Notes under the pieces: model-generated | The model's input: only the letters and a program-made list of their open reading frames with translations | The model's database searches: none | What the model was told of the DNA's origin: nothing | Position numbers and translations under genes: made by a program | Assembly (NCBI GenBank): GCA_002269645.1 | Contig: NIVC01004076.1 | Location: 1 to 61,706 of the forward strand | Length of the DNA stretch: 61,706 nucleotides | Reading direction: 5' to 3' | Origin: Macrostomum lignano | Taxonomy: Eukaryota | Shown: positions 2,249 through 29,895 of the stretch, in pieces | Layout of the letters: the number at the start of each line of letters is the position of its first letter | How positions within the stretch are numbered: position 1 is the stretch's first letter

Positions 2249-4490
2249 TCACCCGATAGAAACGCTACCGTGTCAAGGATCACAAAACACATAAAATTCT
2301 AGTAACTTTGTGGCGACTCTTGTAAACTTTAACGACTCAAATGACTGTAATTCGACGTAGAGGCGAATGTGAATTCAGAAACGTGTCAAGTGAGTTGTAG
2401 CTTCTTAAGAGTCGCAAAAGAGTCGTCCATGAGTCAATTTTAACAATAAACGCTGTTGGAATGATAAAGGCGCATATTTGAGGGAAAGAGTCAATTTTTG
2501 AAGGCAATGTTTCGTCGATAGACAGAGACGAGTTGGTTTTTACATTTGATTTTAATTGATACGTTCGTGCCAATCACGTGTATTGCAATCGTCGAGAATG
2601 CCATGTTTGCCAGAATGGGAGAAAGGCAGTTGAACTTCCTGGCAGTTTCCTGCCACATATTTGCTTGTAGTTTATTCGTTTTGCACACGGTTTCGCCTTA
2701 GAGTAAAAATACCGTATTGGTTGTAGACGCGGCTACATCTATCTGTGAACTTTTTTCTCGCTTTTATGGACAATGTTTGTGGACACGCATTTGATTCCAG
2801 CTAATCCACTCACACTTACAGGCAACTCTGTTGCTTTCAAAGCAAATTTACACACTGTAGGCAGTCAGTCAGTCTCGTGGCTCTTTCCCACTATGCTTTG
2901 CTAATGGAATGCAATTAAGAAAAAGCTGCATCGTAAAAGTCTTAGTGATAGTTTTTTCCCAGAGACAGACCTGATAGACAGAGGCTCTGCGTTTGATGGA
3001 CTCGCTCGCTCAACAAGTCAACATGCCACAGGGGTTATAAAGTTATCGATGAGGACAGCCTTTATTGACCGTTTGTCAAAGCTGAAAAGGCATCCTGGAC
3101 GAGTCGCTGTGCTCGCAACACGGTCTGAAGCTTCTGAAAATTTAAAATAAATTTAGATAATTCTCCGGTGTTATACATACGCAGGTTGAAGTTCATGTAA
3201 AATTGAGTGGCGCTACTGTCCACAGCTGACTCGTGCGATCATGACTTAATGCAAATTAAAATAACGAGTTGACTTTCTAATCTGTCGGCGCCTTTTGCTC
3301 TTCCTAACTCCTTTCCTGTCTTGCTAAATATAAAAGATGTGTCGCAAATCGGACATGGACTGACGTCACTAATACTTGCGGATTAAGAAGTGTAAACTAT
3401 ACCTTATGCTCGTGTACCAACCGGCCGAGTTCTACTTCGGCAGGGTGTTCCTCGTTCTGGCGCTGACGTCGGGCACGGTGGCCATCTGCGTGCTGCTGGC
3501 CTGGAACAACAGGACCGCTCGGCGAATGCACTCCGACACGGCCGGTGTTAGGGTTTCTGCTCTCCGGAGTTAAGGATCTCCGGCCCGGCGATCCAACCAA
3601 AAAAATTACGCGATTTTACAATCGCCCTCACGGATATCAGGAACCATGACATAAGATAAGGTTACAGATCGCCGCCATGCTAGACTCTCCGGAGTATTAT
3701 TATCTTAGAAAATTGGAAGATAAGAGATAAATTATTCATTTCTTTCTAGAATGTGATTCTAATTAGAAAGCCCAGCTCGTGAGCAGCCTATAGCTTGCGC
3801 AACTTTTTCGATGAGTTCATCCATCTAGTGCATCGTACATTTGCATGCCCTGTGAGGGCTAAATTTAGAGTTGGCCAGACTTGTGCATCATTTTTCGTCT
3901 CTGTGCATTTGTCGAGGGATTTGATTGTCATATATAAGCAGTGAAATAAAACATATTGTGAGTAATTGTCTGTTTGCGGTTATCTTTACTTTCTACTTGT
4001 CAAATGGCTACTTTGAATCAAATATTCTTTTATGTACTGAACAATGACTGCGCACAAATTCCTGTTGACTTGAACTCGAGAGAGAAAAGCAATTTGAAGA
4101 GGCGCATCAGGTAAAAGAGCAGAAATTTTAGCATTCACGATGGAGCATTGTTTTACATGGTGAAAAATAAAGATGGCAGTAAGCGCATGCGGCCCGAAGA
4201 CAGACGCAAGGTGCTGTTTACCGAGCAAGAAGTGCAAGTAAAGGTTTTGAGCCTTCATTCTCAAGGGAGCCATGTTGGCTTGAACAGCACCGTGAGTCTT
4301 TTCACGGCAAGGTACTATGCCGATATACCTGTAACACCGATTGCCAAAGCTGTGGTTCAGGCGTGTGCGAGGTGCGAAATGGTCAACAAGAAGTTTTCTT
4401 CAGCGCAGAAGGAGCTGCATCCCATTGAAGTTTCCAGGAATGCAGAGCGCCTCTTCGGCTTTTTGTGCATGGACTGCATCACAATGGAGG

Positions 4491-4616
4491 GCTCATCGGA
4501 AGTCAGAGTTTAAGGCAATGGCCTAATTGACACTCGCGGCTACCGCTAGTGTCGCTAGTGTAGCTACCGCCGCTCGTGTCAAAGGCCATTGCCTTAAACT
4601 CTGACTTCCGATGAGC
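4491..4616. repeat. Perfect 34-bp inverted repeat (fold-back hairpin) at the left Crypton end
   Basis: 4491-4524 GCTCATCGGAAGTCAGAGTTTAAGGCAATGGCCT is the exact reverse complement of 4583-4616. Inner pairing continues (TTGACAC/GTGTCAA, GCGGC/GCCGC). Confidence 0.95.
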
Positions 4617-4858
4617 ATCATTGCTTAAAATTTCAAAACTCTTACGTAATCTACGCACTTTATGTACACTATCGTGAATTCTTATCAGTCGATGCTGCTA
4701 AGGGGGTTTGAGATAAGGTTGCCTCCACCTCGCCTATGTCTCACCTTTAAGTCGCGCACCTGAAGTCAGCCACCCCTTACTCTGCACCCACCCCTAAATT
4801 AATTAAAAATATAAATATTTGCGTGTCTAGAGGTCAAATCTCAGATAGAGAAAAGCGG

Positions 4859-7056
4859 ATGGCTGCAGAGATGGAGGCACCGCTTATTAATTGGAAGTAT
4901 TTGCCCTGCAGTGAGCTGGGCAACGTGACCAAGGACGAATTAAATTTTGTTTCGGAGGCTTCTTACAATGACAGAAGGGACGACGAGTTCGCTAGATTCT
5001 CGAATTCATTCAAAAGGAGCCCGAGCCCGATGAGCATCTGCCGCTCCTGCAGGAAGGCGGCGTAGATATCAGCGCCATGGACATCGCCGAGATTGACAGC
5101 CTACCAGCAGACAGCAGGAAGCAGATGGACAGCGGTTCAAGACATTCCTCACAGAGGAAAATCTTCAGCGCAATTTACAAACCATTCCGAATTCGGTGCT
5201 CAACCAATACATTCGCTACTTCTACTTTAAACTGAAGAAGATTGACGGCGAACCCTACTCGCCCGCATCGCTGGTGTGCATCAGGGCTGGACTGCAGCGC
5301 TATTTGCGGATGATCGAGAAGCTAACCGTTGACATCATCAATGGAGAAGACTTTTCTTCTGCAAATAGCATGCTGCGTGTGAAGGTTCGAGACTTTCACC
5401 AGAGTGGTGGGAGGACGCAGCAGTTTGAGCCAATCGAGGAGGGGGACATGAGGAGCTGATGATCTACTTCCAAGGCAGCACAGCTGAAGTTGAGCAGGAC
5501 AAATTCTTATTCTACATCATATACAGCTTTGGCGAGCGAGGCCAGGAGCACCTCAAGTTCTTGAAGGATAGAAGCTCACTTCAATTGCACGTCGACTCTG
5601 ATGGAAAGCCGTACTACTGTCTGCCTCCGTTGCCCTCGAAAAATAAGTCAGCAGATCCAGAGAAGGCCAAGAAGCAGCCCGACAACAAGCAGGCCAGAAT
5701 TTACGACGTGGAAAAGGTGGAGAAATACCTCAAGCTGCTTCCAGTTACAACGAAGGACAACAATCTGTTTCCTCGTCCTTTGGCCAGCCGCAACGATGGA
5801 GGCCCTGTTTTCTCCTCGAAGCAGAACCGTGGAGAGAATTATCTGAGTGGCTTCATGAGAAACTTGAGTACGAAGGCGGGACTTGCGAAGACCTACCAAG
5901 GACGACTTAAGTAGAAGGACGGGAAACCTCGTTTCTTAGAAAATTTTTGAAGGCACTTTTTCCCGAAAAAATACACTGCGGAGATAGGAAATTTTCATTT
6001 TTTCAGCACAAAAATTGCTATAACTTTTGATAGGAGGCAGATCCAGTGTTGATCTTTTGATATGTTGTGCCTTTTTTATTGCTCTATCGATATTTATAAA
6101 GCTTTCCGTTCAGAAAATTAGGATTGTATGTTAATTTTTTATTCTACGTATATTTTCATGTGTCTTGTGCTTGAAATACATTAGAATGCCACGGCTCGGC
6201 TCTTTGGTTTTATGAGTCTATTTTATCCTTCTTACCTGACTGTATAGCAAATAGTCGTAACATAGATGATAAAATAGATTCATAAAACCAAATATTAGAG
6301 CTGTGTCATGCATTTTTGTGATTTTTAGATACAGGAAATATCCGTAGAATAAAAAATTAACATAGAATCCTAATTTTCTGAACGGAAAGCTTTATAAATA
6401 TCGATAGAGCAATAAAAAAGGCACAACATATCAAAAGATCAACACTGGATCTGCCTCCCATCAAAAGTTATAGCAATTTTTGTGCTGAAAAAATGAAAAT
6501 TTCCTATCTCCGCAGTGTATATTTTTTCGGGAAAAAGTGCCTTCAAAAATTTTCTAAGAAACGAGGTTTCCCGTCCTTCTACTTAAGTCGTCCTTGAGAC
6601 CTACACGAATCATTGCATTCGGTAAGACTGATAAATTAATAATAGTAACTTTAATTATGTTATGATACATGTTATGTTACCAATTACTCATGAATCCAAC
6701 TATATAAATTTGCACTCTAAAACAGGGTCACGCGAATATGCGATCTCGAGGCGGCAGGGCACAGAATGAGCGATATAATGAGCATTACTGGACAGCTGAG
6801 CGAGCGAGCGACTAGGAGGTACCTAGCCAAGCGTCGCGACCGGTCGCTTCAAAAGACGAGTGAGTCTGTTCAAGTGGCATTGAATCGTCATGATCTAGAG
6901 CAAGAAGCTGGGCCACCCGAACATGCTGATGCTGTTGAGATCGTCGGTGAGACTGTAGTATCGACGGAGGTTAGTGTTAGCACTGAAGCTGCCTATTCTG
7001 TTGATACGAAGTTTGCCTTCAACAATTGCACCTTTCACGGATGTTCCTTTAATTAG
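4859..7056 (+). pseudogene. Crypton tyrosine recombinase (DUF3504 / ZMYM-QRICH1-KCTD1-related), frameshifted and MITE-interrupted
   Basis: Contains LNQYIRYFY..KKIDGEPYSPASL...AGLQRYL, FGERGQE (catalytic R) and SKNK. After MITE removal the sequence reads KTY-TNHCIR. Intron 6622-6725 then gives RVTRICDLEAAG...IMSITGQ.S..ATRRY (Y present) and a C-terminal FNNCTFHGCSFN. Frameshifts occur near 5040-5100 and at 5455. Confidence 0.85.
5897..6596. mobile_element. 700-bp non-autonomous long-TIR element (MITE), possibly P-superfamily
   Basis: TIRs of about 250 bp start CAAGGACGACTTAAG and have few mismatches. The 8-bp TSD AGACCTAC lies at 5889-5896 and 6597-6604. CANRG termini with 8-bp TSD fit the P superfamily, but the family call is tentative. 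Confidence 0.9.
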
Positions 7057-8779
7057 GCATGCAATCTTTACTTCTACAGGAATCAGCAAATTGTACTCGT
7101 AGAATTACTGAAAGAATAAGAACGACAGTCTAGTATAATATTTTTTATTTAATGACTTTTAGTACTTTGCTCGACCAGTATGATGTTCATCACCGACAAA
7201 AATTTACATGATATACTGACACTGTGCTTTTTGTACTGTCGATTTTGCAATTCCTGTGCCAGTTTAATTATTTACATCTTAAAATAAACGTTTTGAATTG
7301 ACTGATGCAAGATACGCTTTGCAAGATGCTGGATAAAAACTGGCTTGAATTAATTGGTTGCATTGAAATTGGAATTCTAGGCAATGGCCTGCCATCGCCA
7401 TGGGTCATTGCCATGAGGAGAAATTTTGGGCAATGCCGACTACCACACCAAACGGTTCGAAATATATCCTGACTGTATGCTGCAAGTTTACAAAATTTTC
7501 CATTTTTCGGGCGTTGCCGAACATCAAAGCGCTGACTATCGCAGCCGAGTTAAAAAGCATCTTCGCGCTTTTTGGCTGGCCATTTGTCATTCTCAGCGAT
7601 CAAGTACGCGAGTTTTGCAACTCTGTCTTGGACGCCCTGCTGCAGTCCGGAGGAACGAAAAGAAGAGTGACCAGTGTTTACTACCCACAGGTAACCTTAA
7701 CAGTAATGTTTTATGCTTCTGATATTATGTAGCAGTGGTGCATCATTTTTAAGTACGAGTAAATAACTAATTTTCTCCAGACAAACGGTCAGACTGAGCG
7801 CCTCAACCAAACGTGCATTAATCTACTGAGAAAGCGGTGTGATTCTGAGGAACCAACTAACTGGGATTCCATGCTGAATGATGTTCAACTCGCATACAAC
7901 AGCCGCCGACATTTGGTGACAGGCTTCTCGCCGTGCAGGTAAAATATGAAAGTAATAAAGTTTATAGAGAATCAAGTATATTTTATAAAGCATATTTCTA
8001 TACTGTAGCAGACAATGTTAGTTCATATGCCTCCATTCATCTTTAGAGCCGCCTTTGGCTTTGAGCCATTGCTAGGCGATCATGCCGCAGCACTGGCTTC
8101 GGTTCCGGAGCCGATGGAAATCAACAGGCGATTGCTTGCCAACAAGGACAAGAAGCGAGCCGCAGCGCGAAAACTAATTGCGCGTAGAATCAAGATCGCT
8201 CAAGAAAAGATGCGACCAAGGACCTTGGATGCGACAGCGTCACTTGGTTTCGGCTGCTGGAGCTCAAGAGCTAAAGCGAGGAGACAGAGTTCGGCTTCGA
8301 AATCTGCGGAGGAATGATCGAAAGGGTGGCAAGATGCGATACACCTGGAGTCAGCAGGTCTACATCGCGACGAGGTGCCTCGGTCGCAACGTATATCGAT
8401 TAGGAGGTCTCACTAGACGTGTCAATGGCAGGCATCTCAAGAAGTGCTTTCTACAAGTACAATGGTTGAGCAAATCTCCAGTTTTTTATTAGAATCGCAT
8501 GCGGGATTCTGAACTGACAGCACTCGTACGAGTATTTATCAAAGGTTTCCAGCTCGTATTTTTGCCCTGGTATGGTGCATCACAGCTGCAAAATATACTG
8601 GCTACAGTGAAACGTTAAACTACGATCTTACGGAATGTAAAATGTCTTGAAATGGAAAAAATGACTGACATTGTTAGCGATTTTTACTACCTTTTATGCT
8701 TCGATGAAAATTGTTAAACGGTTAAGAGAAGGAAACTACAACAACACTCGTTGCACGATTACGATTTCGGACTTTATAA

Positions 8780-9081
8780 AAATGGGGAGATCGGTAACCG
8801 GAGATCCTAAACCAAACCTTAGTTTTTGCACTCGTGACGGAGATCGGCAAACGGTGTAGAATCTCCGAGGGGATAACAGAATCTGGTTTTGCATCTCCGG
8901 ATAGGGAGACCTGACCATGCCCCGGAGATCCCACAACGGTTACGGATCTCCGATTGTGGAGATCCCTAACCGTTTGTATTCTCCGAAGGAGATCCTAAAC
9001 CCTTTAAGATCTCCGGTCGGAGATCCCAGCCCGTTTGCAGTCCAAAACTGACCAGAGCCCCGGAGTTTCTAAACCGTAATA
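8780..9081. repeat. Subterminal array of GGAGATC(C)/GATCTCC motifs at the Ginger right end
   Basis: About ten copies in both orientations (e.g. 8800, 8840, 8924, 8945, 8958, 8988, 9009, 9019). One GGATCTCC copy is at the left end near 3573. Confidence 0.75.
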
Positions 9082-12000
9082 CCGGCTCTGAGCAGCAGCA
9101 GCGGAGCAACCGAGAGCGACAGAGGCCGCTTGTTCGGATCAGCCTCATGCTGGTCTTCATCAACGTCTTCTTTCTGATCACGTCTTTGCCGTGGAGCATC
9201 GGCGCTCTGCTCGAAGTCCAAATTCTAAATAAGCTCAAAGTGAACTTCTTCATATTGATGATGCGGCACTTCAACTCGCTGCTGTACGCGAACAACGCTC
9301 TGTCCTGGGTGTGACGTACTTGATGGGACGGAACTTTCGAGAGGCGTTTTGCCGAGTGTGGCTGTCCCTGTGCTGCTGCTGCTGCGCCTCCTGCCGTCGT
9401 CGCTCCAATTTTGCGTAGAGGGTAAAAATATAGCGCTGAACTAAAATTTCATGTTGCTGAATTAGTCACAATGAGCGTAGATGGCTTATAAATATCAAAG
9501 AAGACAACATTTTTAGTAAAAAAATAATATTTTACTGCATTGTCGATTCAGCTCTGTCCAAATATTGGTCATAGCGTTTCCAGCTGATATCGGCAAAAGA
9601 GTGTGTTTGAGCACGTCAGGAGTCGGGATACGACATCTTAGTGAGCTAGCTACTAGTGACCTAGCCTGAAGGTTAAGCTTCAGGCTTAGGTATAGAAATC
9701 AAGGTTTTGCATAGGGTTTAGGTTTTAGGGTCAAAGCAGTAAAATTGTCTCGGTAAGGTCAGACAGGTTCACAGATAATAAATTACTAGATATTTCACTC
9801 TGCATTGAGTTAAGCCATTTTTTGTGTTATAGTCTATGGCTCAAAAAGTGTCTACTCTTTGGATGAGCGTCAGTGTGCGCATAGCAAGAAAAATTGCTAG
9901 TTGCTCCAAAAAGAATTTTGACGCAAGGCACTGCGTGCCTACGGGTGCACGCATCCATGTTCGTTCACGCTACTAACCAAAGAGTAGTTGCAAAAATCTA
10001 AACAAGAGTGAACTATCTAGGGTTATTGTATCTGTGGACAGGTTTAGTTGTTTAGTTGCATTTAGAATATATGCACCTTTTTTCATTTAAATTACGTCCA
10101 ATCCTTTAGTACTGGTTTTAAGCTGTCATTATGGAATCTCTCAAGATTGGTTGCCTAGGTTTTACGAGTTTAGAGAGCCAGATAGCAAGAGATTTAAACT
10201 TGTAATACATAGCGTCTAATTGACACAATCTGAAGTTTGACAACCTCGTATAAGAGTCATCTAATCGAGCAAGTGCATTTTTGAACTGTTGACTGCCTTT
10301 ATGCTTATCTTTCATCGATACAAAGTGTTAAGGTCAGATTCTCCATAAGTGCACAGAAGCTACAGCAGCCAAGAAAGTTTGGCGCTGACAGCGAAGAAAA
10401 CCTGCAATAAATTCTTCATGACACGATTAGACCTTTTATTTGAGTAGGCCATCCTTGTGTCAAGGCCAAAGTATAGACCAATTTGAGTTCAGTTCCTCCA
10501 TGCCTTTAGCTCGGATATAGTATTAAGTCGGAAGAACGAAACCGCGGATAGCAAATATCGTCCATAAATGTGATTATCAGCTTATCAGCTGCCAAAATTG
10601 TCACCTTAACTCAGCTAACGTACATGTAGAACCAGAGGATTCCGCCAGCAAGACATTATTTGTAGCCGATCTGGAACTTAATTGGTCTAAAAGTATAGCT
10701 ATAACCACAATGGATCAAGAGGGCCAGAGAACTTTAATTGCAATAATAGCGAGGGTACCATAGATGGAAATTGCGGAGGTGACAGAGAAGAACAAAAGAG
10801 TCATTAAACACAGTAGATAGTACGTTTGGATGCCTTCGATACCGAGCTGATATGAGCGAGGACAAGAAAAATTTATGAAACAACTTTGCAAGCACCGTAT
10901 CGAAACAATTGTTGTGTGCTGCACTTCGGTATACTACAAGGGCACTCCGTCCTATGCGTGTACTCTTACTGGATTTTCTTTGTTTATTTACTCTAATTGT
11001 TTTGGCGTCTCGGCTCTGGCTGGTTGGCGGCGGGCCCCGGGCTGAGACTTTGTGACTTCCCCGTCAGGTGTCGCCAGCTGATTGGTTGAGCCAGGCGTTT
11101 TTGTCTCTCCCGCTGTTACTGTAACTTTTTTGCTGCTCTCTGATTGGCTAGGGGTGATGGGCGCTGGGTGTCCCTCCCCCCGGGCAGGGTGGTGGGCTGG
11201 AAGGTGTGAGCCGTTTTTAGATCCGTACATGCTGTTGAAACCCGCGGATTTTGAACCCGTGGAATTCTAATCCTCGGAACTATTTTTGCATGTATTCTAG
11301 AATCTGAAGTCATACTAAAAAAAACTTGTTAATAGTTAGGATAGAGGTACGTAAATATAAAATGGTGTAAATTCGTGCAAAATTAAAATTTTTGGCAAGC
11401 ATTGATCTCGTTGGCTAGGGTGCTGCGCAGAATGTCAGGCAATGTCTGTCTAAAACATGTACGAGCTATTGGCAAACTCTGGCCTCTGCCTCTGCCTGTA
11501 CGTCCCTCGGATCCTTGAAAACTTCTATCCTCTCTAGGGAATTCGTCCCTGGGGACACTCGCCGGGGACCCCGGGGAATTTTCACAAAAACCTACCCGGG
11601 GAATTCGTATCGGGGACCCCGCGGGCAAATAGGAAAGTGAAGTAGTCACGGAAATTGATGTAGCAACATTGTTAAAGCTGTGTGCAATTAATTTTAAATG
11701 ATAATGCATATACATAGTAGTGTGTACTCGTAGATTAAAAATTGCCTTAATATATAGCCGTGAGTTAACAACTTCGGGTTGGCAATCTGCAGTACATATA
11801 ACAGCATGACAGTCTATAAAGACAATAGCTATATTTTACTCAGACTACGCTCCATACTGTTTTTTACTCATCATTCAATATTCTTCTCATTGTATGACTT
11901 TTTGTAGTTTTTTTACTGCTTCTAGCAAATCTAATAAAATTCTAACAATGTATATGTTGTTTAACCTGTGTGAATAGTATTTTTTTCGTTTTTTGCTTGC

Positions 12001-12491
12001 AATCATTTAAGATGGAAATGTGACTGACTAACTGTCCAGTGTCCAGTCCCAGTGTCCACGCATGCAAATGCAAAAAAAATTATCTCATCTTTAGAAGAGA
12101 TAAAATTTCTACATCCGTACAGTACCTAGCCAGTACCTCCCCATACGCCGGCCTGTGCGTCTCGATGCTGCGCTGAGTGTGACCGTCATTATAGCGCCCC
12201 AACCACCGGGCATTGCGAGCACTCGCGTCCTGACGCAGGCGAGTAAGGACCCAGATACTAGCAGAGTACCCTGTTCGCCCTCAAGGACCACCGAGGTTAG
12301 GGGTCAGGAATACAACACAATGCATAGATACAACATTTCGGGTTCTTCTCTGTGAAAAAAAACAGAAAATCAGTAGCCAGTAAATCAGTAGCCAATGATA
12401 ACTGGCCAAGCATGTAACGCAAGGAATCGGCTTATTCAGCAGTCTGTCATTGGCTGGCAAGAGTCGGTGGAAATTTATTCATTCAGAGAAG

Positions 12492-12503
12492 TATATATAT
12501 AAG
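12492..12503 (+). promoter_or_regulatory. Candidate TATA box of GPCR paralogue 2
   Basis: TATATATATAAG about 60 nt upstream of ATG 12561. Confidence 0.4.
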
Positions 12504-12560
12504 TAGCCCCAAACTGAGCCCTCAAGACAAGTTAGCTAAGCCACAATTCAGATTTTCATC

Positions 12561-13613
12561 ATGAACAGCACCGACAATACTACTCATGTAGCAAATAAGC
12601 CATGGTTCCACGACCCCACCTGGAACTGGTTCATCTGGAACGTCTTCGTCTGGCTCTTTCCGCTGCTCTGTCTGGTCGGAGCGGTTGCGAACGCCGTCTC
12701 CTTCTACGTGATCGTGTCCAACAGGAAGTCGTTTCCCTACGTCACCAGGCAGTACCTCACCATCATCACTGCCAGTGACTTTCTCATTCTCACGTGCAAA
12801 GTGAGCACTCACTACTTTGGCTACATGGCATTCTACGTGAAGACGAACAAGTGGACCTGGTTCACTTTTCCAAGAGCCTGGGGACTCGCTTGGTGCATTG
12901 TGTACGACTTCTTTACATACTATGCAGTCATGGGTGTTCAGTTTTTTCAACTGGGCCTCATGGCGGATCGGCTGATTGCAGTAGCGGCTCCGATGAAGGC
13001 CAAGGTGATTCTGACTCACCGCAGAAGCTGGCTGATGCTGAGCCTCATCACTGCAATGTCACTGCTATTGCCGATCCTGTTCGTCGCGAATAGGAGGTGG
13101 AACGACGACACAAACTCGTGCGTTCTACGCAGTAAAGACTATTTAGTGAACGTGTACCAGCCGGCCGAGTTCTACTTCGGCAGGGTGTTCCTCGTTCTGG
13201 CGCTGACGTCGGGCACGGTGGCCATCTGCGTGCTGCTGGCCTGGAACAACAGGACCGCTCGGCGAATGCACTCCGACTCGGCCGGCTCTGAGCAGCAGCA
13301 GCGAAGCAACCGAGAGCGACAGAGGTCGCTTGTTCGGATCAGCCTCATGCTGGTCTTCATCAACGTCTTCTTTCTGATCACGTCTCTGCCGTGGAGTGTA
13401 AGCGCCCTGCTAGAGCGCGAGATCATCGAGCGCATGGGAGAGAAGTTCAACTCTATCATATTGTTTCACTTCAACTCGCTGCTGTACGCGAACAACGCTC
13501 TGTCCTGGGTGACGTACTTGATGGGACGGAACTTTCGAGAGGCGTTTCGCCGAGTGTGGCTGTCCCTGTGCTTCTGCTGCTGCGCTGCCTTCCGTCGTCG
13601 AGTGGACACTTAG
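12561..13613 (+). CDS. Class A (rhodopsin-like) 7TM GPCR, peptide-receptor-like, intronless (paralogue 2, 350 aa)
   Basis: Seven hydrophobic segments, N-terminal N-glycosylation sequons, TM1 GxxAN, TM2 ASDFL, DRL in place of DRY, Cys near TM3 and in ECL2, TM6 LPW, and a Cys-rich C-tail. Confidence 0.92.
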   Translation: MNSTDNTTHVANKPWFHDPTWNWFIWNVFVWLFPLLCLVGAVANAVSFYVIVSNRKSFPYVTRQYLTIITASDFLILTCKVSTHYFGYMAFYVKTNKWTWFTFPRAWGLAWCIVYDFFTYYAVMGVQFFQLGLMADRLIAVAAPMKAKVILTHRRSWLMLSLITAMSLLLPILFVANRRWNDDTNSCVLRSKDYLVNVYQPAEFYFGRVFLVLALTSGTVAICVLLAWNNRTARRMHSDSAGSEQQQRSNRERQRSLVRISLMLVFINVFFLITSLPWSVSALLEREIIERMGEKFNSIILFHFNSLLYANNALSWVTYLMGRNFREAFRRVWLSLCFCCCAAFRRRVDT

Positions 13614-14110
13614 GGCAGCAGCTCGACGGCCAGCACTCGGCAGGGCGCTCGTTGGAGCCCAAAACCTGACTTGGAGGCTGATACCTAACACCTATTTAGC
13701 TCGTTTGATGGACTAACTGGATCGCTTTAGAGCAGCTTGACTTGCACCGATTTTTCATCGCAATCAGTGCATGCGAACAAAAGTGGCTGCAGTCTGCGGT
13801 TGATGGCACTGGTATTGAGATAATTCAAAAGCAAACTGCAGCTAGGTGTATGCGTTGTAGTTTAATGAAAAATGATTGATTGAAGCCTCTTTTTTGTCGA
13901 GTGCAAATAAGTATAGCTAAGTATAGCTACGATAGGAATTCAAATTGCGAAGCCCAGAGACGAGAAAGAATGCTAGTACGGCATAAAAAAAAATGACGTC
14001 GAAGAAAGCGAAAAACGATTTTGCTCTGCGCGCATTGCAAATAACTATTGCTGTGTGCCCATGGCAACTATTACCAAGTTCCTTTCAGTCTCTGTCTGCA
14101 CTAGTAAATA

Positions 14111-16172: not shown

Positions 16173-16968
16173 TTCTCATTCTCACGTGCAAGGTGAGCAC
16201 TCACTACTTTGGCTACATGGCATTCTACGTGAAGACGAACAAGTGGACCTGGTTCACTAATTCGAGAGGTTGGGGACTCGCTTGGTGCCTTGTGTACGAC
16301 TTCTTCACCTACTATGGGCTGGTAGGATCCCAGTTCTTTCAACTGGGTCTCACGGTAGATCGGCTGATTGCGGTAGCGGCTCCGATGAAGGCCAAGGTGA
16401 TTCTGACACATCGGAGAAGCTGGGTAATGCTGAGCATGTTCATGTTCATGTTCGTCGCGAATCGGACGTGGAACGACGCCACTAACAACTGTGGATTACG
16501 AAGTGTCAACTATCTAGTGAACGTGTACCAGCCGGCCGAGTTCTACTTCGGCAGGGTGTTCCTCGTTCTGGCGCTGACGTCGGGCACGGTGGCCATCTGC
16601 GTGCTGCTGGCCTGGAACAACAGGACCGCTCGGCGAATGCACTCCGACTCGGCCGGCTCTGAGCAGCAGCAGCGAAGCAACCGAGAGCGACAGAGGTCGC
16701 TTGTTCGGATCAGCCTCATGCTGGTCTTCATCAACGTCTTCTTTCTGATCACGTCTCTGCCGTGGAGCATCGGCGCTCTACTAGAAGACCAGCTGGTTAC
16801 TGAACTTGGAGCAACCCTTTCATATTCAACTCGCTGCTGTACGCGAACAATGCTCTGTCCTGGGTGACCTACTTGATGGGACGGAACTTCCGAGAGGCTT
16901 TTCGCCGAGTTTGGCTGTCCCTGTGCTGCTGCTGCTGCGCCGCCTTCCGTCGTCGAGTGGACACTTAG
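16173..16968 (+). pseudogene. GPCR paralogue 3, 5'-truncated with TM4 and TM7 deletions
   Basis: Starts inside TM2. TM4 is collapsed into ATGTTC repeats near 16435. A deletion and frameshift occur near 16812-16825. Otherwise it is nearly identical to paralogues 2 and 4. Confidence 0.92.
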
Positions 16969-17408
16969 GGCAGCAGCTCGACGGCGAGCGTTCGTTAGGA
17001 CTCAGACCGAGCATGATTGCAGGGTCTTTAAGCTGCTTGACTTGTGGACTGACAGAATTTTTAATACGTTTTCGAGAATCAAAGCAATCTTTATTTCTTT
17101 TTTGACTTCAGCTTTAATGACAAATTTTCTGTAAATCACTATTTATTACTCTTTACTGGCTATTTTCTGTTCTTTTTTCTTCTGGCTGTGCTCAGTTCGT
17201 TAGCGCTTTTGCCGCCCGAAATGGAAAGTTAATCATGCTAATTGGCTGTCAGCTGCTGAGTTTGTCTGCTTGTGAAAGCCGCTTTGAGGAGCGACAAATC
17301 AAGCTGAGATGCAATTAACCTGGCTGTTATCTTTAACCTGGCTGGATGAAACTGTAAACTTCTTGCAGTGCAAAAGCAGCGCGATGTAAGAGTGTTGTGT
17401 CTGGTAAC

Positions 17409-19331: not shown

Positions 19332-21897
19332 CATGGGATCGGCAAACCTTTTTACCTGGAGGGCAAGATAGAGAATCCAAGAGCATGACTGTTTGCCAGA
19401 TGAGAGAGGAAAGGAGAGGAAATAGAGGAGAGAGAAGAGGAAAGATAAGATGAAATATGAGATGGTAGAGAAGATAAGAAGAGAGAAAAGGGAAGAGAGA
19501 GTGGAGATTAGAAAAAAGAAAATAGAGGGAAGAGACGAGAGAGAAGTTTCGAAGGACCTAAGGAATGGAGAGAGAGGCCAGAGGCCAGAGTCCAGATCTT
19601 GTAACGCATTTTTAGACAGATGTTGCCTGTCATCGACATCATTCCGCGCGGCACCCCAGCCGAAGAGATCCAATGCTTGCCTCAAATTTTGCATCTGTGG
19701 CAATCAGTTAAAAAGCTGCAATTGGGAACCAGCATTAGGGCCGCAGTTTATGGGGATAAAACGGCTTATATCAATTTTGAGTCCCAAGAATGAAGCAAGC
19801 ATGACTTTACATTTGAGCGAATCTCTAGGAGATTATTCTAAGCCCGATCAGACAGGAATGTGTTTAAGAATGTATGCAAAAACAGTCCCTGGATTGGAAT
19901 TCAACGGGTTCAAAATCAAGCTTGTCTATATATATAGATATGAATACTCTGTCTGTCTGTGTGTCTGTGTACAAAGTTGATCACTATGGACTCCCAAACC
20001 GCAAATATTGTAGTGTAATAAAATTTTTGAATTCAGAAAATCACTGCCTAGTGCTGCCTGGAGGGCCATTAACCAGCTGACTGGCAGGAAGCCCAGGCTC
20101 AACATCATCTTCGGTGCTGATTCCACCGAGCACCGCAAGGCCCTGCTGGCCAACCACTACCGCGACGTGCTCAATGCGCGTCTTCTGCCAATCCCAAACT
20201 TCGCTCCAGCCCAGGCAGGTGCCTTCAACACCGGCCCCTTCACTGCAGGCGAGGTTGGCCGAGCGCTGACGACCATGCGAGCTGATGCCGCTTCTGGGGT
20301 TGACACCATCCGTCCCAGGGTCCTGAAGCTGCCTGAGCTCCACTCCAAGCATCACCAGCTTGCTGAACAAGCACTGCAGCCTTGGAGGCAACGAGGCTGC
20401 CCCAGCTCCTCAGCAATGGCGCACCTCCAAGATTGTCTCCACCAGCCTCCACCAGCCTGGACAACCAGCGGGGCATCGCTCTGGAATGCACAACGCCGAA
20501 GCTGCTGACCGCAATTCTGCACATCCGCCTCCTGCCCGGCCTCAACCCGCTGCTGCCGAGCCAACAAAGAGGCTTCCGTCCGGGCAGGTCCACCACCGAG
20601 CAGGTTGCCACCATCCGCTCTGTCATTGAGGCCTGCAATACTTGCCAGCGTTCCGTGTCAATCATCTTTGTCGACTTTTGCAAGGCATTTACACGATAGG
20701 TGTCCAGGCCTGCAATCGGGTGGCTTCTATCTCACTATGAAGAAACTGCTGCGCTGGTGAGCGCGGTGATGGACCTCTACCGCGACTCCAGGGCCTTTGT
20801 CGATCATTTCGAGCGATGGAATCACAGAAGAGTTCGGCACCAGCTCAGGCGTCCTTCAGGGCGACACGCTGGCTCCCCTGCTTTCCTTCGTGGTTGTGGA
20901 CTAAATTTACGTGCTTCGTCGGTCCCTTCGCGAGGATGACAGCTACTTGCTGGTCTCACGCCGAAGCTCCAGACGCCCTGCTGTTTTGCTTCCCGCTCTC
21001 CGTATGCTGCCCAGTGGGCTCTCACAAGGCTTTGCGACGTGGGTGCCCGTGTTGGGCTGCTGGTGAATTCTCGCAAGACAAAGGTGCTGCACGTGGGCAC
21101 GAATACAGCCCCAAATATCACGCTGCCCAATGGAGACCGCATCTCGGTGTGCGAGGACTTTCGGTACCTCGGCGTACTGGTGATGAACCCAGTTGCAATT
21201 GTCTGACAGAAGAAACCAGGGCCTAGCGCGCTGCGCACCTCCTTAGGAACGTCTTTAATTCAGCTGCCAGAGACAACCTGAAGGTGCGCCTGTTCTGCGC
21301 AGCCGCAGAGCCAATCCTCCTGCACGGCATGGAGGCGGTGCCGCTGACCGTCACGCGAAGGCGAGCCCTGGACGCGCTCTACCGATCGCTGCTGCGCTAC
21401 GCGCTGGGCGTGCACCACGCGAAGCGCCTGCCGACCCGCGCTTGAGCACCACCCTGAGCGCTACCCTGAGCAACCGCCGTCAGATGCTGCTGGGCCACTG
21501 CATGCCTACGGACCCTGGACCGCGGTGTGCAACAAACAACAGAAAACAGGAAACAGACAACAAAGGTAGCTCTTCACAGACCAGCAGATCGAGTGCAAGT
21601 GCGGCAGAAGGAGAGCAAACCCAGAATAGAAGCCCTCGACCACAGAAAAGATCAATCCCGTCGGCTCAAGGTTGGTGTTATTTTTCAGCTCTCTTTTTTA
21701 TATTCTCTTCTCTCTCCCCACTCTCCTCAATCCCCTCTTCTCTTATCTTATCTTCTATCTTTTCTGTCATCTCTCGCCTCTCTTCTCTTCTGTCATCTCT
21801 TATCTTCTATTCCCTACCCTATCCACTCTCATCAGATCTGCGGCCATGAGCTGGATTCTTTATCTGGCCCATGACGTAAAAAGCTTGCCTATCCTTG
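19332..21897. mobile_element. Pair of inverted hAT/Charlie-like termini, each followed inward by a GA-rich tract
   Basis: CATGGGATCGGCAAACCTTTTTACC..GGGCAAGATAGAGAATCCA at 19332 resembles the reverse complement of the 21897 end (CAAGGATAGGCAAGCTTTTTACG..GGGCCAGATAAAGAATCCA), a MER58-like terminus pattern. No matching TSD is visible, so these may be two separate copies. Confidence 0.45.
20050..21530 (+). mobile_element. Degenerate 5'-truncated non-LTR retrotransposon (RTE-like RT)
   Basis: Frameshifted RT motifs: AASGVDTI, NQRGIAL, QRGFRPGRSTTEQV, IFVDFCKAF, SGVLQGDTLAP, FA.DD region, GLLVNSRKTKVL, FRYLGV. Confidence 0.85.
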
Positions 21898-23132: not shown

Positions 23133-23354
23133 TGGTTGCTTTCACAAAGGCGAAATTTCACAACCGCTAATCACCTTCTTTCATAAACGCGAAATTTCAT
23201 AACCGCGAAACTTCACAACCGCTAAATCACCTACTTTCATAAGCACTAAACTTCACAAACGCGAAATTTCACAACCGCTAAAAAGACTGCCGTATATGAA
23301 AGTAAGTGCAAAAATTTTAGCGGTTGTGAAATTTCACGCTTGTAAAACCCACCC
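23133..23354. mobile_element. 222-bp MITE with 38-bp imperfect TIR and internal motif array
   Basis: An 8-bp direct repeat CTCTCTAG lies at 23125-23132 and 23355-23362. The motif (A)AATTTCACAACCGCTAA is repeated internally and inverted at the right end. Confidence 0.7.
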
Positions 23355-23399
23355 CTCTCTAGGACTTGACTTGAGACGGTGCTGCTGGTACGTGCGAGC

Positions 23400-24310: not shown

Positions 24311-24640
24311 ATCTATGGAAATTTTTCCCAACGAAATGTCCTGTTGCTAAAACAATCCGATATTGGTGAACTGAAGCAAATCAATTGAAGGCTCAATTAG
24401 ACATAAAACTGTAACAATGGCGTGTGAAAGATCAAATGAATGGCACATATCAGTTCTATCATAAAATCTTTCGGTGAAAATACTCAAAAGATTAAACGGA
24501 TTCTAATCGGCCTTGCAAGCGTGAAGAGAGAACTGGATGCATCGTTAAAAAACCAAGAAAAAAGTTCGCGAAACCAATGGGAACACCTCACAGCTGCGGA
24601 ATAGGCTATTCAGCACACACCTAACCTTGAGATTTTTGGG

Positions 24641-24648
24641 TATAAATA
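24641..24648 (+). promoter_or_regulatory. Candidate TATA box of GPCR paralogue 4
   Basis: TATAAATA about 100 nt upstream of ATG 24746. Confidence 0.5.
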
Positions 24649-24745
24649 GAAGCTCAAACCAATCATGCACTCGACTGCTGTATATCGAATTCATGCTTCA
24701 TTCTTGCTGAAGCAACACTAAGATTGCTTTGTTCAAACCGAGCAG

Positions 24746-25822
24746 ATGAACGAAACAAACTCTAGCAATCCTCAGGAGCCCTGGTTCCACGACCCCAACT
24801 GGAACTGGTTCATCTGGAACGTCTTCGTCTGGCTTTTTCCGCTGCTCTGTCTGGTCGGAGCGGTCGCGAACGCCGTCTCCTTCTACGTGATCGTGTCCAA
24901 CAGGAAGTCGTTTCCCTACGTCACCAGGCAGTACCTCACCATCATCACTGCCAGTGACTTTCTCATTCTCACCTGCAAGGTGAGCACTCACTACTTTGGC
25001 TACATGGCATTCTACGTGAAGACGAACAAGTGGACCTGGTTCACTAATCCGAGAGGTTGGGGAATCGCTTGGTGCATTGTGTACGACTTCTTTACATACT
25101 ATGGGCTGGTAGGATCTCAGTTTTTTCAACTGGGTCTCACGGTAGATCGGCTGATTGCGGTAGCGGCTCCGATGAAGGCCAAGGTGATTCTGACACATCG
25201 GAGAAGCTGGGTAATGCTGAGCCTCATCACTGCAATGGCACTGCTACTGCCGATCATGTTCGTCGCGAATAGAACGTGGAACGACGCCACTAACAACTGT
25301 GGATTACGAAGTGTCAACTATCTAGTGAACGTGTACCAGCCGGCCGAGTTCTACTTTGGCAGGGTGTTCCTCGTTCTGGCGCTGACGTCGGGCACGGTGG
25401 TCATCTGCGTGCTGCTGGCCTGGAACAACAGGACCGCTCGGCGAATGCACTCCGACACGGCCGGCTCTGAGCAGCAGCAGCGGAGCAACCGAGAGCGACA
25501 GAGGTCGCTTGTTCGGATCAGCCTCATGCTGGTCTTCATCAACGTCTTCTTTCTGATCACGTCTCTGCCGTGGAGCATCGGCGCTCTACTAGAAGACCAG
25601 CTGGTTACTGAACTTGGAGTCAACCCTTTCATATTGATGATGCGGCACTTCAACTCGCTGCTGTACGCGAACAACGCTCTGTCCTGGGTGACGTACTTGA
25701 TGGGACGGAACTTCCGAGAGGCGTTTCGCCGAGTGTGGCTGTCCCTGTGCTGCTGCTGCTGCGCCTCCTGCCGTCGTCGAGTGGACGCTTCGGGCAGCAG
25801 CTCGACGGCGAGCACTCGATAG
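24746..25822 (+). CDS. Class A GPCR, intronless (paralogue 4, 358 aa)
   Basis: Intact ORF with the same 7TM motifs as paralogue 2 and a CCCCC tail. Confidence 0.92.
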   Translation: MNETNSSNPQEPWFHDPNWNWFIWNVFVWLFPLLCLVGAVANAVSFYVIVSNRKSFPYVTRQYLTIITASDFLILTCKVSTHYFGYMAFYVKTNKWTWFTNPRGWGIAWCIVYDFFTYYGLVGSQFFQLGLTVDRLIAVAAPMKAKVILTHRRSWVMLSLITAMALLLPIMFVANRTWNDATNNCGLRSVNYLVNVYQPAEFYFGRVFLVLALTSGTVVICVLLAWNNRTARRMHSDTAGSEQQQRSNRERQRSLVRISLMLVFINVFFLITSLPWSIGALLEDQLVTELGVNPFILMMRHFNSLLYANNALSWVTYLMGRNFREAFRRVWLSLCCCCCASCRRRVDASGSSSTASTR

Positions 25823-28779
25823 AGCGTGCTCTAGGACTGATCGACTGGGCTGAGCTGATGGATTGAAAGATCTTATAGACTCAATGATTTGCGATGCACA
25901 TCTATTTTATTCTGACTAATGTGACTGCAGTCATCTAGAGGAAAATTCGAACTTTAAAAAACTATAGAATAATTCGTTCAAATTCTTATTGAAATAAAGC
26001 AATGAGGCTGAAAGTTTTGATTATTGTGGCTTAGTTAATTAACTTAATATTTATCATAATGCAAAAAACTAAGTCTGGACAAATATGTCTTATATAGAAA
26101 TGTTGAGAATAAAAACATTCGAACGGGAAAAGTATAAAATGGAAATAGACTCGTTTGTTTCGATGCAAATGTTCTTTCTTTACAGTCATAAATTAGCTCC
26201 TATTGATCCGTTTTATTCAGACTATGAAGCTCCTATCTAGTTTGATTGAAATACGGGTACATGTAAGTAGCTACTAAGCTAGTCTTTTTTGCAAGCTAAC
26301 CTACATCAAGCTAACAACTTGTATTGATTTCTCAATACTGGGAATTAACGAGGATGCAATGCGAGCTCTACTTATCCTGCGGCTTCGTTTTATTTACACT
26401 TTCCTTTGCTGGGTTTCCACTGGGCTTACTCGACTCCAGGAGTGCATGCTTACAGTTTTACTTTCGGTCAAGCATATACCCGAACTGTTTTCCTATGAAA
26501 GCCAAAAGTCTGATTGATCAGGAACAATCAGATTACTGTCTTGTAGTCGTTGGAAGTAGAAAGCGACACAAAATCAAGACTGAACAAGCTTCAGGATCAC
26601 AAACACCTTCTATCAATAATCGAAGCGACATCTTCATTCATCTTACGCTCGTAAAACACGCAATATTACGATATTTTGTTTAAAATGTTTTACACGCTGT
26701 TATCTGACAAGGTATGGTATAACTATAGGTACATTCAGTCCTGCTGGTCGTTGCTTGAAAGCTTAAGCCGAAGACTAAAATAAACTGAACTGTAGCCCCC
26801 ATGCGACGTCAGCCGATCTTGCATTATTAAAAATTAATTTCTAACATCAGCAAGATTAATTTGCTGCTTCAAAATAAGCGATAGCCACTACGAGCTTAGG
26901 AAGAAAATTTGTTTGAGCCAATCTTGTTTACTCAGCCTGTATGCATAGCTTTCGCGGAAGCAATTTTTGGCAGAGAATAATCACCCGTCAGTCCTGTGCG
27001 GTGTTCGAAGTTATTTTTTACAAGCTGCAGCCCTATATTCAGATGTAGTCAATCCGAAGTCAGAGTCGGCCTTTTTATTTGTTATTGCAGAATACTCGCT
27101 GCAATTCTTGTTACTCGTATACTTTTAAGGAAATGAGAAGCAGATTTGAGTGTCATTCCACATTGCAGATACGATACTGATTACATTTCTCAGCAGAGCA
27201 AATGAAAGCAACAGATGAAGAAGAAAAGCAGCAGTGCTTAAGGAGTCTGCAAGTGTCCTCGACCGTTTTTTTATTATGCCAGCCTCCTTGCAGCTGTTGC
27301 AACTTTTAGCGCGAATGCATATTGCGTTATTGGTTGGCAGTCATGATTCTTCTTTGCCTTCTTCTAGGTTTTGAAGTGACGAAAAATTTGACGCACTCTT
27401 AGAGAACGGTGTGGCATACTATACTCTCGTATATTAGTTTTTGGGTCGTCGTCTGACATGGGCTGGAGGGTAGAGGACAAAATGGTGCACCTTTTGCATC
27501 AACGAAATATATGCAAAATTTACTTTAAAGCTTCTATCGTCCTACTGATAGTAGAGTAATTGGCGAGCTTACTGTTGGACTGGTCCTTATGCAACAACAA
27601 GTGCCATGGAAGTCCTCAACAAGTATTATCTGCGAAGTAGCATGCACAGGTCCGATTACATTTTAGCATAAAAAAAGATGCATGCTGAGCTGGCTCGGGG
27701 TTTATTTAAAGGCAAATAAAATGAAAATAGAAAAAATAATGATTTACTTATAAAAATCAACATCATCATCACTCTTTTTGTAAAGATTTTTGCATTCCAT
27801 CTGCAATCGCAGGAACTCCCTAATTACGGATATAATTACACGTTGCCTATAGTAGTATATAGTGTATAAGCTTGTCCAATTGATTTGCAATCTTATATTA
27901 ATAATTAATATTTGGCTAGTGCGCAAGAACCGGTAGACAACAAGGACTCCTTGGAAGGCGCGCGTGACTTCCTGTTGTCAGATGAGGCTCAAGACAATCC
28001 GGCACACGTTGGACTGAGGTTTTAGCTCAGCCTGCGAGGACACGTACACGCTGCACGCGGACAAGACAAAAAGTACAAAGAAAGCAGAGACCAAGCAGGA
28101 GGCGACACAGGCCGGTAGAATTCCGCGTTAGCGAATGAGAAGCGATCTTGCTGCTTTTTAAAGACTGCATGCTTGTAGCCTTGAAAAACGCTTCTGAACG
28201 TCATTAGACGTTGAGCCGCGCGTTCAGTACTCGTTGTCCATCCGTTCTGGTTGAATTCAGTTCCTTGTTGGCTTCTAATATCAGGTAAGTCCGCTATTCT
28301 ACGTATATTTCTTACATTGGAGTTGACTACTACACAAACTAGGGCAATTCTCTCTTTTAATGCCACAGCTCTAATTTAATTCACCAAAATATTTTTAGTT
28401 CTTTAGTACGAGGGTACCAATGAACTTCATAACCGTTATTGGTCGTTTTCTTTCTTATTTTCATGCACTTTCGACGTACAAGCACATCTTCCTGACAACT
28501 GGACTGTATTTTTGGCAGACCACATTTTTAGAAAACAAATACAATAATGGCAGTAATATAACCATAAAGTTTGTCTATTCATTATAGGATGGTACACGTA
28601 ATACTGCATTCGCGATTAATTATTCACATTTACTGCGTATATTGCCTTGCAGAAGAAACTTCAGTGGAAAGAGTCTCAAATAAATAAAATTTAGCTTGTA
28701 GCTACTTTACACGTGTGGCTGAAGGCTACCGAATCAGAAGCACAAGCACCTAGAGTTTTCAGCCGGAAGAATCGAAGCA

Positions 28780-29895
28780 ATGAATAACACAACAGCTGCT
28801 GGCCTAGAGAGCGAAAGAAATACAACCAGCGAGTTTGGCGATCCTATATGGAACCAGTTTGCCTGGGCCGTCTTCATATGGCTGTTTCCGCCGCTCTGTC
28901 TGGTTGGAACAATCGCCAACGCCGTCTCCTTCTACGTGATCGTGTCCAACAGGAAGTCGTTCCCCTATGTCACCCGGCAGTACCTCAGCATCATCACTGC
29001 CAGCGACTTTCTCATTCTCACGTGCAAAGCGAGTACACATTATCTGATCTATATCAAAAGCGTATCGGACTCAAACACTATCTTTCTGTCACCGAGAGCC
29101 TGGGGACTCACCTGGTGCATTGTGTACGACTTCTTTACCTACTATGCGCTGGTGGGATCCCAGTTCTTCCAGCTGGGCCTCACGGTGGATCGCCTGATAG
29201 CCGTAGCCGCTCCGATGAAGGCCAAGGTGATTCTGACGCATCGAAGAAGCTGGGTGCTGCTAGGCCTCATCACTACGATGTCGCTGCTACTGCCAGTCAT
29301 GTTCGTCGCGAACCGGACGTGGCATAACGGCAATTGTGTCTTCCGCAGCCAACAGTACTTCGAAATTGTGTACAAGTCGGTGGAGTTCTACTTTGGTAGG
29401 GTGTTCCTGGTCTCCGCTTTAACCTCTGGCACAGTGGCCATCTGCCTGCTGCTGGCCTGGAACAACAGGACCGCTAGGAGGTTGGACATCGAGGTGAATG
29501 CCACTGAATCGCAACAGCTGCGTCACAAATATCTGGTCCGCATCAGCCTGATGCTGGTCTTTATCAATTTAATCTTTCTGGCAACAGCCCTGCCATGGAC
29601 CATTTCAATTCTAACGGAGGACCAGTTGACCACAGTGATGGGCCAGGACTTTTACTATCGAATGCTCCGCCATTTCAACTCGATCCTGTACGTAAACAAC
29701 GCAGTAAGTTGGATTGCCTATTTCATGGGCCGCAATTTTCGCGAGGCCTTTTGCCGCTCATTGCGAACAGAGCAGCTGCGCCGCCGCTGGCAACAAAGGA
29801 GCGGTCAAAGGCCGTCCGGCCTGGCGCCGCAAGCAAGGGACGCCGAGATCGAGGACTTGCAGGTGGAGACGACGCGGTTTTTAGCGGAACCATAG
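28780..29895 (+). CDS. Class A GPCR, intronless (paralogue 5, 371 aa, most divergent)
   Basis: Intact ORF with TVDRLIAVAAPMKAK, a shorter ICL3, and a different C-tail without the poly-Cys. Confidence 0.92.
   Translation: MNNTTAAGLESERNTTSEFGDPIWNQFAWAVFIWLFPPLCLVGTIANAVSFYVIVSNRKSFPYVTRQYLSIITASDFLILTCKASTHYLIYIKSVSDSNTIFLSPRAWGLTWCIVYDFFTYYALVGSQFFQLGLTVDRLIAVAAPMKAKVILTHRRSWVLLGLITTMSLLLPVMFVANRTWHNGNCVFRSQQYFEIVYKSVEFYFGRVFLVSALTSGTVAICLLLAWNNRTARRLDIEVNATESQQLRHKYLVRISLMLVFINLIFLATALPWTISILTEDQLTTVMGQDFYYRMLRHFNSILYVNNAVSWIAYFMGRNFREAFCRSLRTEQLRRRWQQRSGQRPSGLAPQARDAEIEDLQVETTRFLAEP

Follow-up and report, generated by a model that had tools for sequence, protein, structure and literature searches.

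A mosaic array of orphan class A receptor genes in the flatworm Macrostomum lignano is best explained by recurrent short-tract gene conversion

The window analyzed here, 61,706 nucleotides (nt) of the free-living flatworm Macrostomum lignano (positions 1 to 61,706 of contig NIVC01004076.1, assembly GCA_002269645.1), contains five intronless copies of a class A G protein-coupled receptor (GPCR) gene, termed c1 to c5, which tblastn and blastn place on the same (+) strand between 3.3 and 29.9 kb. Near-identical coding blocks alternate within these copies with old, strongly diverged extracellular segments, and the DNA on either side of the copies cannot be aligned. Interlocus gene conversion classically leaves old duplicates whose flanks no longer align but whose coding blocks are nearly identical, and we conclude, with a probability of about 0.78, that an old tandem array undergoing recurrent short-tract interlocus gene conversion is the best explanation of the locus.

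Results

Five receptor copies, two of them pseudogenes

Three of the five copies (c2, c4, and c5) are intact and two (c1 and c3) are pseudogenes. They are listed here with the evidence by which each was delimited (aa, amino acids; ORF, open reading frame; TM, transmembrane helix; ICL and ECL, intracellular and extracellular loop).

3341..3545, + strand: c1a, 5' piece of pseudogene c1, with ECL2, TM5, and the start of ICL3 (tblastn, blastn, projection on c4)
9082..9402, + strand: c1b, 3' piece of pseudogene c1, from ICL3 to the tail, with a 2-nt insertion that causes a frameshift (tblastn, projection on c4)
12561..13613, + strand: c2, intact intronless class A GPCR, 350 aa (ORF, Pfam 7tm_1)
16173..16989, + strand: c3, GPCR pseudogene, 5'-truncated and frameshifted (tblastn, blastn, projection on c4)
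24746..25822, + strand: c4, intact intronless class A GPCR, 358 aa (ORF, Pfam 7tm_1)
28780..29895, + strand: c5, intact divergent paralogue, 371 aa (ORF, Pfam 7tm_1)

The pseudogene c1 lacks the first ∼516 nt of the gene, carries a second 2-nt insertion in c1a (two in total), and is interrupted by a 5.5-kb mobile element; c3 begins ∼214 nt into the gene and carries deletions of 21, 1, and 15 nt. An earlier examination of the letters alone, referred to below as the sequence-only reading, had described a GPCR array at 3411–29895. The array and its end at 29895 stand, but c1 begins at 3341, and that reading had overlooked that c1 and c3 are truncated, frameshifted pseudogenes, the former split by an insertion at 3546–9081. 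The four ECL3 peptides that it quoted match the sequence exactly, and read EVQILNKLKVNFF in c1 (piece c1b), EREIIERMGEKFNS in c2, EDQLVTELGVNPF in c4, and EDQLTTVMGQDFY in c5.

Near-identical and variable blocks alternate along the gene

Among c1–c4, the TM1–TM2, TM5–ICL3–TM6, and TM7–tail blocks are 96–100% identical at the DNA level and contain exact runs of 103–253 nt, namely 107 nt for c2–c4 (in TM1–TM2), 117 nt for both c1–c2 and c1–c3, 103 nt for c1–c4, and 253 nt for c2–c3, the last extending from the end of ECL2 to TM6. For the pair c2–c4, identity in these three constant blocks is 98.9, 98.4, and 96.3%, respectively, compared with 71.7% in the N-terminus, 77.3% in ECL2, and 42.9% in ECL3. 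Four blocks of c2 illustrate the alternation:

12687..12866, + strand: constant block TM1–ICL1–TM2; 2/180 mismatches to c4 (24866–25045), including the 107-nt exact run
13144..13396, + strand: constant block TM5–ICL3–TM6; 253/253 identical to c3 (16515–16767), with 4/253 mismatches to c4 (25323–25575) and 9/253 to c1
13397..13466, + strand: variable block of 70 nt from the top of TM6 through ECL3 to the top of TM7; 42.9% identical to c4 (25576–25645), without indels
13467..13600, + strand: constant block TM7–helix 8–tail; 5/134 mismatches to c4 (25646–25779)

Near-identity over more than 100 bp in the three constant blocks, silent sites included, had been claimed by the sequence-only reading and is borne out. 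Of the variable segments that it named, the N-terminus, ECL2, and ECL3 hold, but its "TM3 top" is really mid-TM3 (∼3.35–3.39) together with 3.47–3.48, and this variation is specific to c2. Antisense ORFs of 95–166 aa also overlap the receptor coding sequence, at 12522–13019, 24698–25198, 25351–25815, and 13172–13459 (all on the − strand). Most likely they are not genes but a consequence of GC-rich third positions, and they are kept in both c2 and c4 because the underlying DNA is kept.

Silent-site divergence is non-uniform along the gene

The proportions of differing silent and replacement sites (pS and pN) were calculated by the Nei-Gojobori method from the five sequences, all of one assembly. 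For c2–c4, pS is 0–0.1 in TM1–TM2, TM5–ICL3–TM6, and TM7–tail, takes an intermediate level of ∼0.22 across ECL1–TM3–ICL2–TM4, and reaches 0.43–0.72 in the N-terminus, ECL2, and ECL3. Silent divergence (dS) is thus strongly non-uniform, consistent with the sequence-only reading, and the whole-gene value of 0.21 for this pair masks blocks of ∼0.05 and blocks of at least 0.7. In the loop blocks, silent sites are near saturation (pS 0.5–0.8) and are about as diverged as they are from c5, whose dS to c2 and c4 is ∼1.

The same contrast is found at four-fold sites, counted in codons with identical first two bases: c2 and c4 differ at 5/96 of these in the constant blocks, 6/34 in ECL1–TM4, and 6/12 in the variable blocks (constant versus variable, p = 0.00017). 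When the constant-block four-fold sites are compared with c5, 24 of 61 and 25 of 60 differ, and silent sites in these blocks are therefore free to change. Further, the ICL2 of c2, c4, and c5 has one and the same protein sequence but a pS of 0.27–0.37, so that protein constraint does not freeze the DNA; the earlier description of near-frozen intracellular DNA applies to the constant blocks but not to this loop.

In c5, silent divergence is lowered solely in TM1–ICL1–TM2. At 28915–29088 (TM1–ICL1), pS to c2 and c4 is ∼0.2, compared with 0.6–0.9 elsewhere, and the segment includes a 44-nt exact run; an older or shorter conversion may account for this similarity, which is of borderline significance (p ∼0.05).

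Mosaic tracts, incongruent ancestry of c3, and unrelated flanks

In a GENECONV-like permutation test, the longest identical run of polymorphic sites is significant for c2–c4 and c2–c3 (p = 0.0005) and for c1–c2 (p = 0.0025), and the same permutation on silent sites alone gives p = 0.003–0.03. Where the encoded amino acid is unchanged, silent differences fall in clusters (runs test, p = 0.013 for c2–c4); for c2–c3 and c1–c4, the longest run of identical silent sites has p = 0.0004; and silent differences adjoin amino acid differences more often than expected by chance (p = 1e-4). The ancestry of c3 is incongruent along the gene: it is sister to c4 over most of its length (pS 0.07 across the shared length, loops included) but equals c2 at every discriminating site in codon columns 211–253 and 357–364. 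Tract end points vary between copy pairs, which fits independent events, and the constant blocks themselves hold copy- or pair-specific variants (columns 245 and 253 set c2 and c3 apart from c1 and c4, and at 211 and 226 c4 stands alone).

Outside the genes, blastn homology between any two copies ends within ∼35 nt of the ends of the coding sequence (CDS), and no alignable similarity was found in 1 kb up- and downstream of the copies except one 18–19-nt motif upstream of c2 and c4. Because the flanks are unalignable in every pair, the duplications would be old, although the coding blocks are all but identical. Overall, the homogenizing gene conversion proposed by the sequence-only reading is well supported by the non-uniform dS, the significant mosaic tracts, the incongruent c3, the unalignable flanks, and silent sites that are free to change relative to c5.

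The motif, GGAAT[C/A]GGCT(T)ATTCAGCA, lies at 12423–12441 and 24598–24615, ahead of the start codons of c2 (by 138 nt) and c4 (by 148 nt); TATA-like sequences follow it, and c5 lacks it upstream. The motif, whose pattern was derived from the same two sites, may act as a promoter element shared by c2 and c4. At the other end of the gene, a TAG stop codon is common to c2 and c3, and c4 continues eleven codons further (compare 13608–13647 and, in c3, 16950–16989 with 25814–25826). The 3' untranslated region of c2 is still homologous to the C-terminal coding sequence of c4, and C-terminal length, too, is therefore passed between copies.

Third-position GC content follows the block structure

GC content at third codon positions (GC3) in c2 and c4 is 0.85 where local c2–c4 divergence is ≤3% and 0.55–0.58 where it is ≥12% (p ∼1e-6), whereas codon positions 1 and 2 show no such difference in GC content. 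At the same columns, c5 shows no significant difference in GC3 (0.74 versus 0.65). Where c4 and c5 differ at third positions, the count with S in c4 is 24:9 in constant and 14:26 in variable blocks (Fisher p = 0.002), in an unpolarized comparison of the two paralogues. These data are suggestive of GC-biased repair in converted tracts. An adequate alternative is codon-usage selection on constrained codons combined with AT decay in weakly constrained loops, and it stands because single-copy neighbors (the ornithine carbamoyltransferase (OTC), MAM33, and Vps39-like exons) already have a GC3 of 0.64–0.89, with intergenic GC at 0.38–0.47. The difference in third-position composition that had been seen by eye is real, but the GC-biased conversion attached to it is no more than suggested.

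Loop divergence fits relaxed constraint

The ratio pN/pS is 0.54–0.59 in the N-terminus, 0.14–0.36 in ECL2, and 0.34–0.78 in ECL3, where values of 0.53–0.78 are the highest in the gene and have bootstrap intervals that span 1; in the constant blocks it is ∼0.2–0.3. Pooled over the variable blocks, it is 0.44–0.54 among intact copies and 0.22–0.49 when c1 is included, with all bootstrap upper limits ≤0.79. No block has a pN/pS above 1 (0.14–0.78 in the variable blocks), a result of low power given the saturated silent sites. The sequence-only reading had proposed diversifying selection on ligand-facing loops. The data do not bear this out, and the loop values fit relaxed constraint, the outcome which that reading had itself named as speaking against it. 

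At every codon position, ECL3 has accumulated about one substitution per site, roughly the neutral divergence of the deepest split. Even so, its length and a scaffold are kept (E290, a hydrophobic residue at 293, L/M297, G298, and F/P301), and the remaining positions and the net charge (+1 to −3) vary. This pattern looks like weak constraint on an old, unconverted segment. With five sequences and saturated silent sites, positive selection at a few loop sites could have escaped notice, and a heterology barrier to conversion explains the mosaic equally well as selection on the loops.

The copies belong to a divergent class A subfamily

The proteins of c2, c4, and c5 score 45.1, 53.2, and 39.9 bits against Pfam PF00001 (7tm_1), all above the gathering cutoff of 30.5, and a profile of the three matches neurotensin receptor 1 (NTSR1) and the μ-opioid receptor from TM1 through helix 8 (E ∼2e-9). 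The TM topology used throughout was taken from the hidden Markov model (HMM) alignment to NTSR1; an AlphaFold2 model from the three-sequence alignment has seven long helices but, at pLDDT 43 and pTM 0.33, was too poor to place the variable residues and was left unused. Class A landmarks fall at the positions expected from NTSR1, namely GAVAN (N1.50), ASD (D2.50), WC (C3.25), the cysteine of NNC in ECL2, and DRL in place of DRY. In TM6, the CWxP motif is replaced by TSLP, with P6.50 kept and W6.48 changed to S, and in TM7, NPxxY is replaced by SWVTY, with Y7.53 kept and N and P lost; relatives carry NWxxY at this place. The loss of the TM6 and TM7 motifs thus marks a divergent subfamily, and superfamily membership stands. 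NTSR1 and the μ-opioid receptor, the closest solved structures, share N1.50, D2.50, C3.25, the ECL2 cysteine, the D/ERY position, P6.50, and Y7.53 with the copies but differ in low overall identity and in the changes W6.48 to S and NP7.50 to SW, and the ligand is not inferable from them.

Searched exhaustively with HMMER, a set of 1.8 billion representative proteins gave a single match below 1e-30, a metagenome orphan, and the next best named matches were from M. lignano and the monogenean Protopolystoma xenopodis. A word-indexed protein search with c4 returned nothing at 1e-5, an exact look-up of the c2, c4, and c5 proteins found none on record in public assemblies, and a metagenome scan with the family alignment gave 74 pattern matches, of which 0 were confirmed. 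Judged by these comparisons, c1–c5 form a lineage-restricted, peptide-receptor-like class A orphan GPCR subfamily, recognizable by [S/N]WxxY in TM7, confined to flatworm-like lineages, and without close public relatives. A chemosensory role is a guess, presumed from similar receptor expansions.

We also considered PROF1/Srfb, a flatworm-specific rhodopsin-like orphan family (PMC3261222, PMC6114109). The copies resemble it in being flatworm-restricted, intronless, and rhodopsin-like with degraded motifs. According to Table 3 of PMC3261222, their DRL in TM3 is as in PROF1-II, F...S.P in TM6 is as in PROF1-I, and I-T-x-x-D in TM2 fits loosely; an aromatic residue stands in place of the NPxxY proline in SWVTY, compared with [N/S][F/G]..[Y/F] in PROF1, but the copies have W where PROF1 has F or G. 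Membership was rejected: an HMM of nine Schistosoma mansoni PROF1 proteins gives c2, c4, and c5 37–42 bits, compared with 40–53 bits from Pfam 7tm_1, and ranks them 98–115 of 154, below a mollusc FMRFamide receptor and many unrelated GPCRs.

Sequence surrounding the array

Mobile-element remnants are abundant in the window, and minisatellites in its second half. The other features are:

3546..9081, no strand assigned: 5.5-kb mobile-element insertion splitting c1, with a 4-bp target-site duplication (CCGG) and a start of TGTTA
35679–36620, − strand: MAM33/p32-like ORF
45553–46077, − strand: OTC exon, 77% identical to the M. lignano enzyme (next best match, 63%), which by itself points to a Macrostomum-like host
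50543–51412 and 57244–58059, − strand: clathrin/VPS-repeat exon and CNH-domain exon, which look like parts of one Vps39-like gene

The element in c1 contains decayed Integrase_H2C2 (4148–4513) and rve (7400–7732) remnants, has weak terminal inverted repeats (16/24 nt) and no long terminal repeats (LTRs), and carries an internal inverted repeat (5897–6596) with 190-nt arms that are 98% complementary; we take it to resemble Ginger1-type DNA transposons and not an LTR element. Further decayed mobile elements lie between c3 and c4 (an rve integrase remnant at 18070–18459 on the − strand and an RVT_1 remnant at 20382–20699 on the + strand). From 34121 to 61706, about twenty distinct minisatellite arrays stand back to back, with periods of 19–48 bp, lengths of 0.3–2 kb each, and 73–97% matches; they are found both between ordinary genes and within them and thus resemble the filler that is typical of introns and intergenic DNA in this genome. 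A subtelomeric location is not supported, as the window has no telomere repeats of the TTAGGG type and its minisatellite half holds ordinary genes (MAM33, OTC, Vps39-like).

Discussion

Conversion requires homology, so that the segments of a duplicate that diverge first escape it for good and conserved segments stay homogenized, as models of recombination and of duplicate divergence describe. In the array of M. lignano, recombinational repair between directly repeated paralogues 3–12 kb apart would copy tracts of ∼50–250 nt or more wherever the paralogues are still similar. In this way, TM1–ICL1–TM2, TM5–ICL3–TM6, and TM7–helix 8–tail would be reset repeatedly in c1–c4, the pseudogenes included, and c5 would be touched rarely, if at all, while the N-terminus, ECL2, and above all ECL3 would retain their old divergence. 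Tracts may end at the loops either because heterologous sequence keeps a heteroduplex from forming or extending there or because selection purges converted loops. Both halves of c1, on either side of the decayed transposon, are still near-identical to the other copies, which suggests that exchange persisted after the insertion.

Several points weigh against gene conversion as we propose it. The data are a single genome and five sequences; cross-polishing of paralogues during assembly could mimic short identical tracts; and the similarity of c3 and c4 across their shared length could reflect a recent partial duplication instead of conversion.

Of the alternatives, the one that fares best accepts conversion of the signaling half of the gene and adds positive selection for new ligand specificities, which would drive and protect change in the N-terminus, ECL2, and ECL3. 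The variable segments are indeed extracellular by alignment to NTSR1 and the μ-opioid receptor, ECL3 keeps its length and scaffold while its other positions and charge change freely, its pN/pS (0.53–0.78, with intervals reaching 1) is the gene maximum, and extracellular variability has been reported in lophotrochozoan class A GPCR expansions (PMC11886862). We nevertheless regard this explanation as possible but doubtful, because no block exceeds a pN/pS of 1 and the pooled ratio of 0.44–0.54 has an upper limit of ≤0.79, because ECL2 is under clear purifying selection, and because silent sites in the loops have diverged as much as replacement sites, which makes the loops look old and not fast-evolving; a heterology barrier would yield the same mosaic without positive selection. 

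Going further, the array could consist of two modules under opposing selected forces, in which conversion is favored because it keeps a single G-protein/arrestin coupling surface common to all the receptors, with the fragments c1 and c3 as additional donors or reservoirs, and extracellular cassettes, especially ECL3, are protected and occasionally shuffled between copies as units. We think this rather unlikely; if true, new receptor specificities would arise in this flatworm by combination in the germline.

We then considered whether the constant blocks are merely young, that is, whether whole genes were duplicated recently and the loops then changed at an accelerated pace by hypermutation or by import from unseen paralogues. 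The low c3–c4 pS, which extends over the whole shared length and its loops, is as this explanation predicts, and loop cassettes may come from family members beyond the window. It is decidedly improbable, however, since the flanks are unalignable up to the CDS ends in every pair, loop silent sites are near saturation, blocks of intermediate age exist (pS ∼0.22 in ECL1–TM4), and c3 alternates between c4-like and c2-like ancestry; moreover, import of loops from other paralogues would be gene conversion anyway.

Similarly, we judge an artefact of assembly or polishing, in which reads of one paralogue corrected another and left false identical stretches of read length, to be quite unlikely. Tract sizes of 50–250 nt are within short-read range, and the c2, c4, and c5 proteins occur in no other public assembly. 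Against this, the constant blocks hold the nested copy- and pair-specific variants described above, each copy has unique flanks and unique loops, the pseudogene lesions are retained, and the gradients of GC3 and dS are gradual, with three levels of divergence and not two.

Finally, a constraint on DNA or RNA (codon usage, mRNA structure, or antisense ORFs) that freezes silent sites without exchange would agree with the constant-block GC3 of 0.85, with the antisense or alternative-frame ORFs over constant blocks (e.g. 12522–13019 and 24698–25198, both −), and with the preference of single-copy neighboring genes for GC-ending codons, but it has scarcely any chance, as the same four-fold sites differ by ∼40% from c5 (on which ground both silent-site constraint and antisense ORFs were rejected as explanations), the frozen blocks are present in both pseudogenes, ICL2 is conserved as protein and not as DNA, the ancestry of c3 is incongruent along the gene, and antisense ORFs are expected from GC3-rich coding sequence.

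Interlocus conversion is familiar from receptor clusters such as primate olfactory receptors, L/M cone opsins, bitter-taste receptors, and vomeronasal receptors, and it has long been established that clustered vertebrate receptor genes undergo conversion in which pseudogenes take part while the binding regions stay divergent. Like these clusters, the M. lignano array has short tracts between nearby paralogues in the same orientation, mosaic identity, dS that varies along the gene, participating pseudogenes, divergent ligand-contact regions, and a possible GC bias. It differs in its host, a free-living flatworm, in belonging to an orphan family without close relatives in public protein sets, and in an unusually sharp contrast, from 98% to 43% and back to 96% identity within 460 nt. 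The general properties of interlocus gene conversion are treated in PMC3790853 and PMC4467073.

Across Lophotrochozoa, free-living flatworms included, lineage-specific tandem expansions of class A GPCRs have been described in which extracellular segments vary and pseudogenes are numerous (PMC11886862). The present array shares with them a tandem cluster that mixes full-length, truncated, and pseudogene members, variable extracellular TM ends and loops, a lack of one-to-one orthologues, and a presumed chemosensory role. That study infers positive selection from sequence entropy, whereas pN/pS gives no such sign here, and gene conversion is not mentioned in it (0 occurrences), whereas a DNA-level mosaic is documented here.

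Overall, the locus is an unusually sharp new example of a known process, ordinary in kind, in a poorly known receptor subfamily, and it provides a clean, statistically supported case of concerted evolution within an invertebrate receptor array. For receptor families of this type, the consequences are that trees and dN/dS of lineage-specific GPCR expansions mislead unless recombination is partitioned out, that high loop variability alone is no proof of positive selection, and that pseudogene fragments are worth keeping in analyses because they join the exchange.

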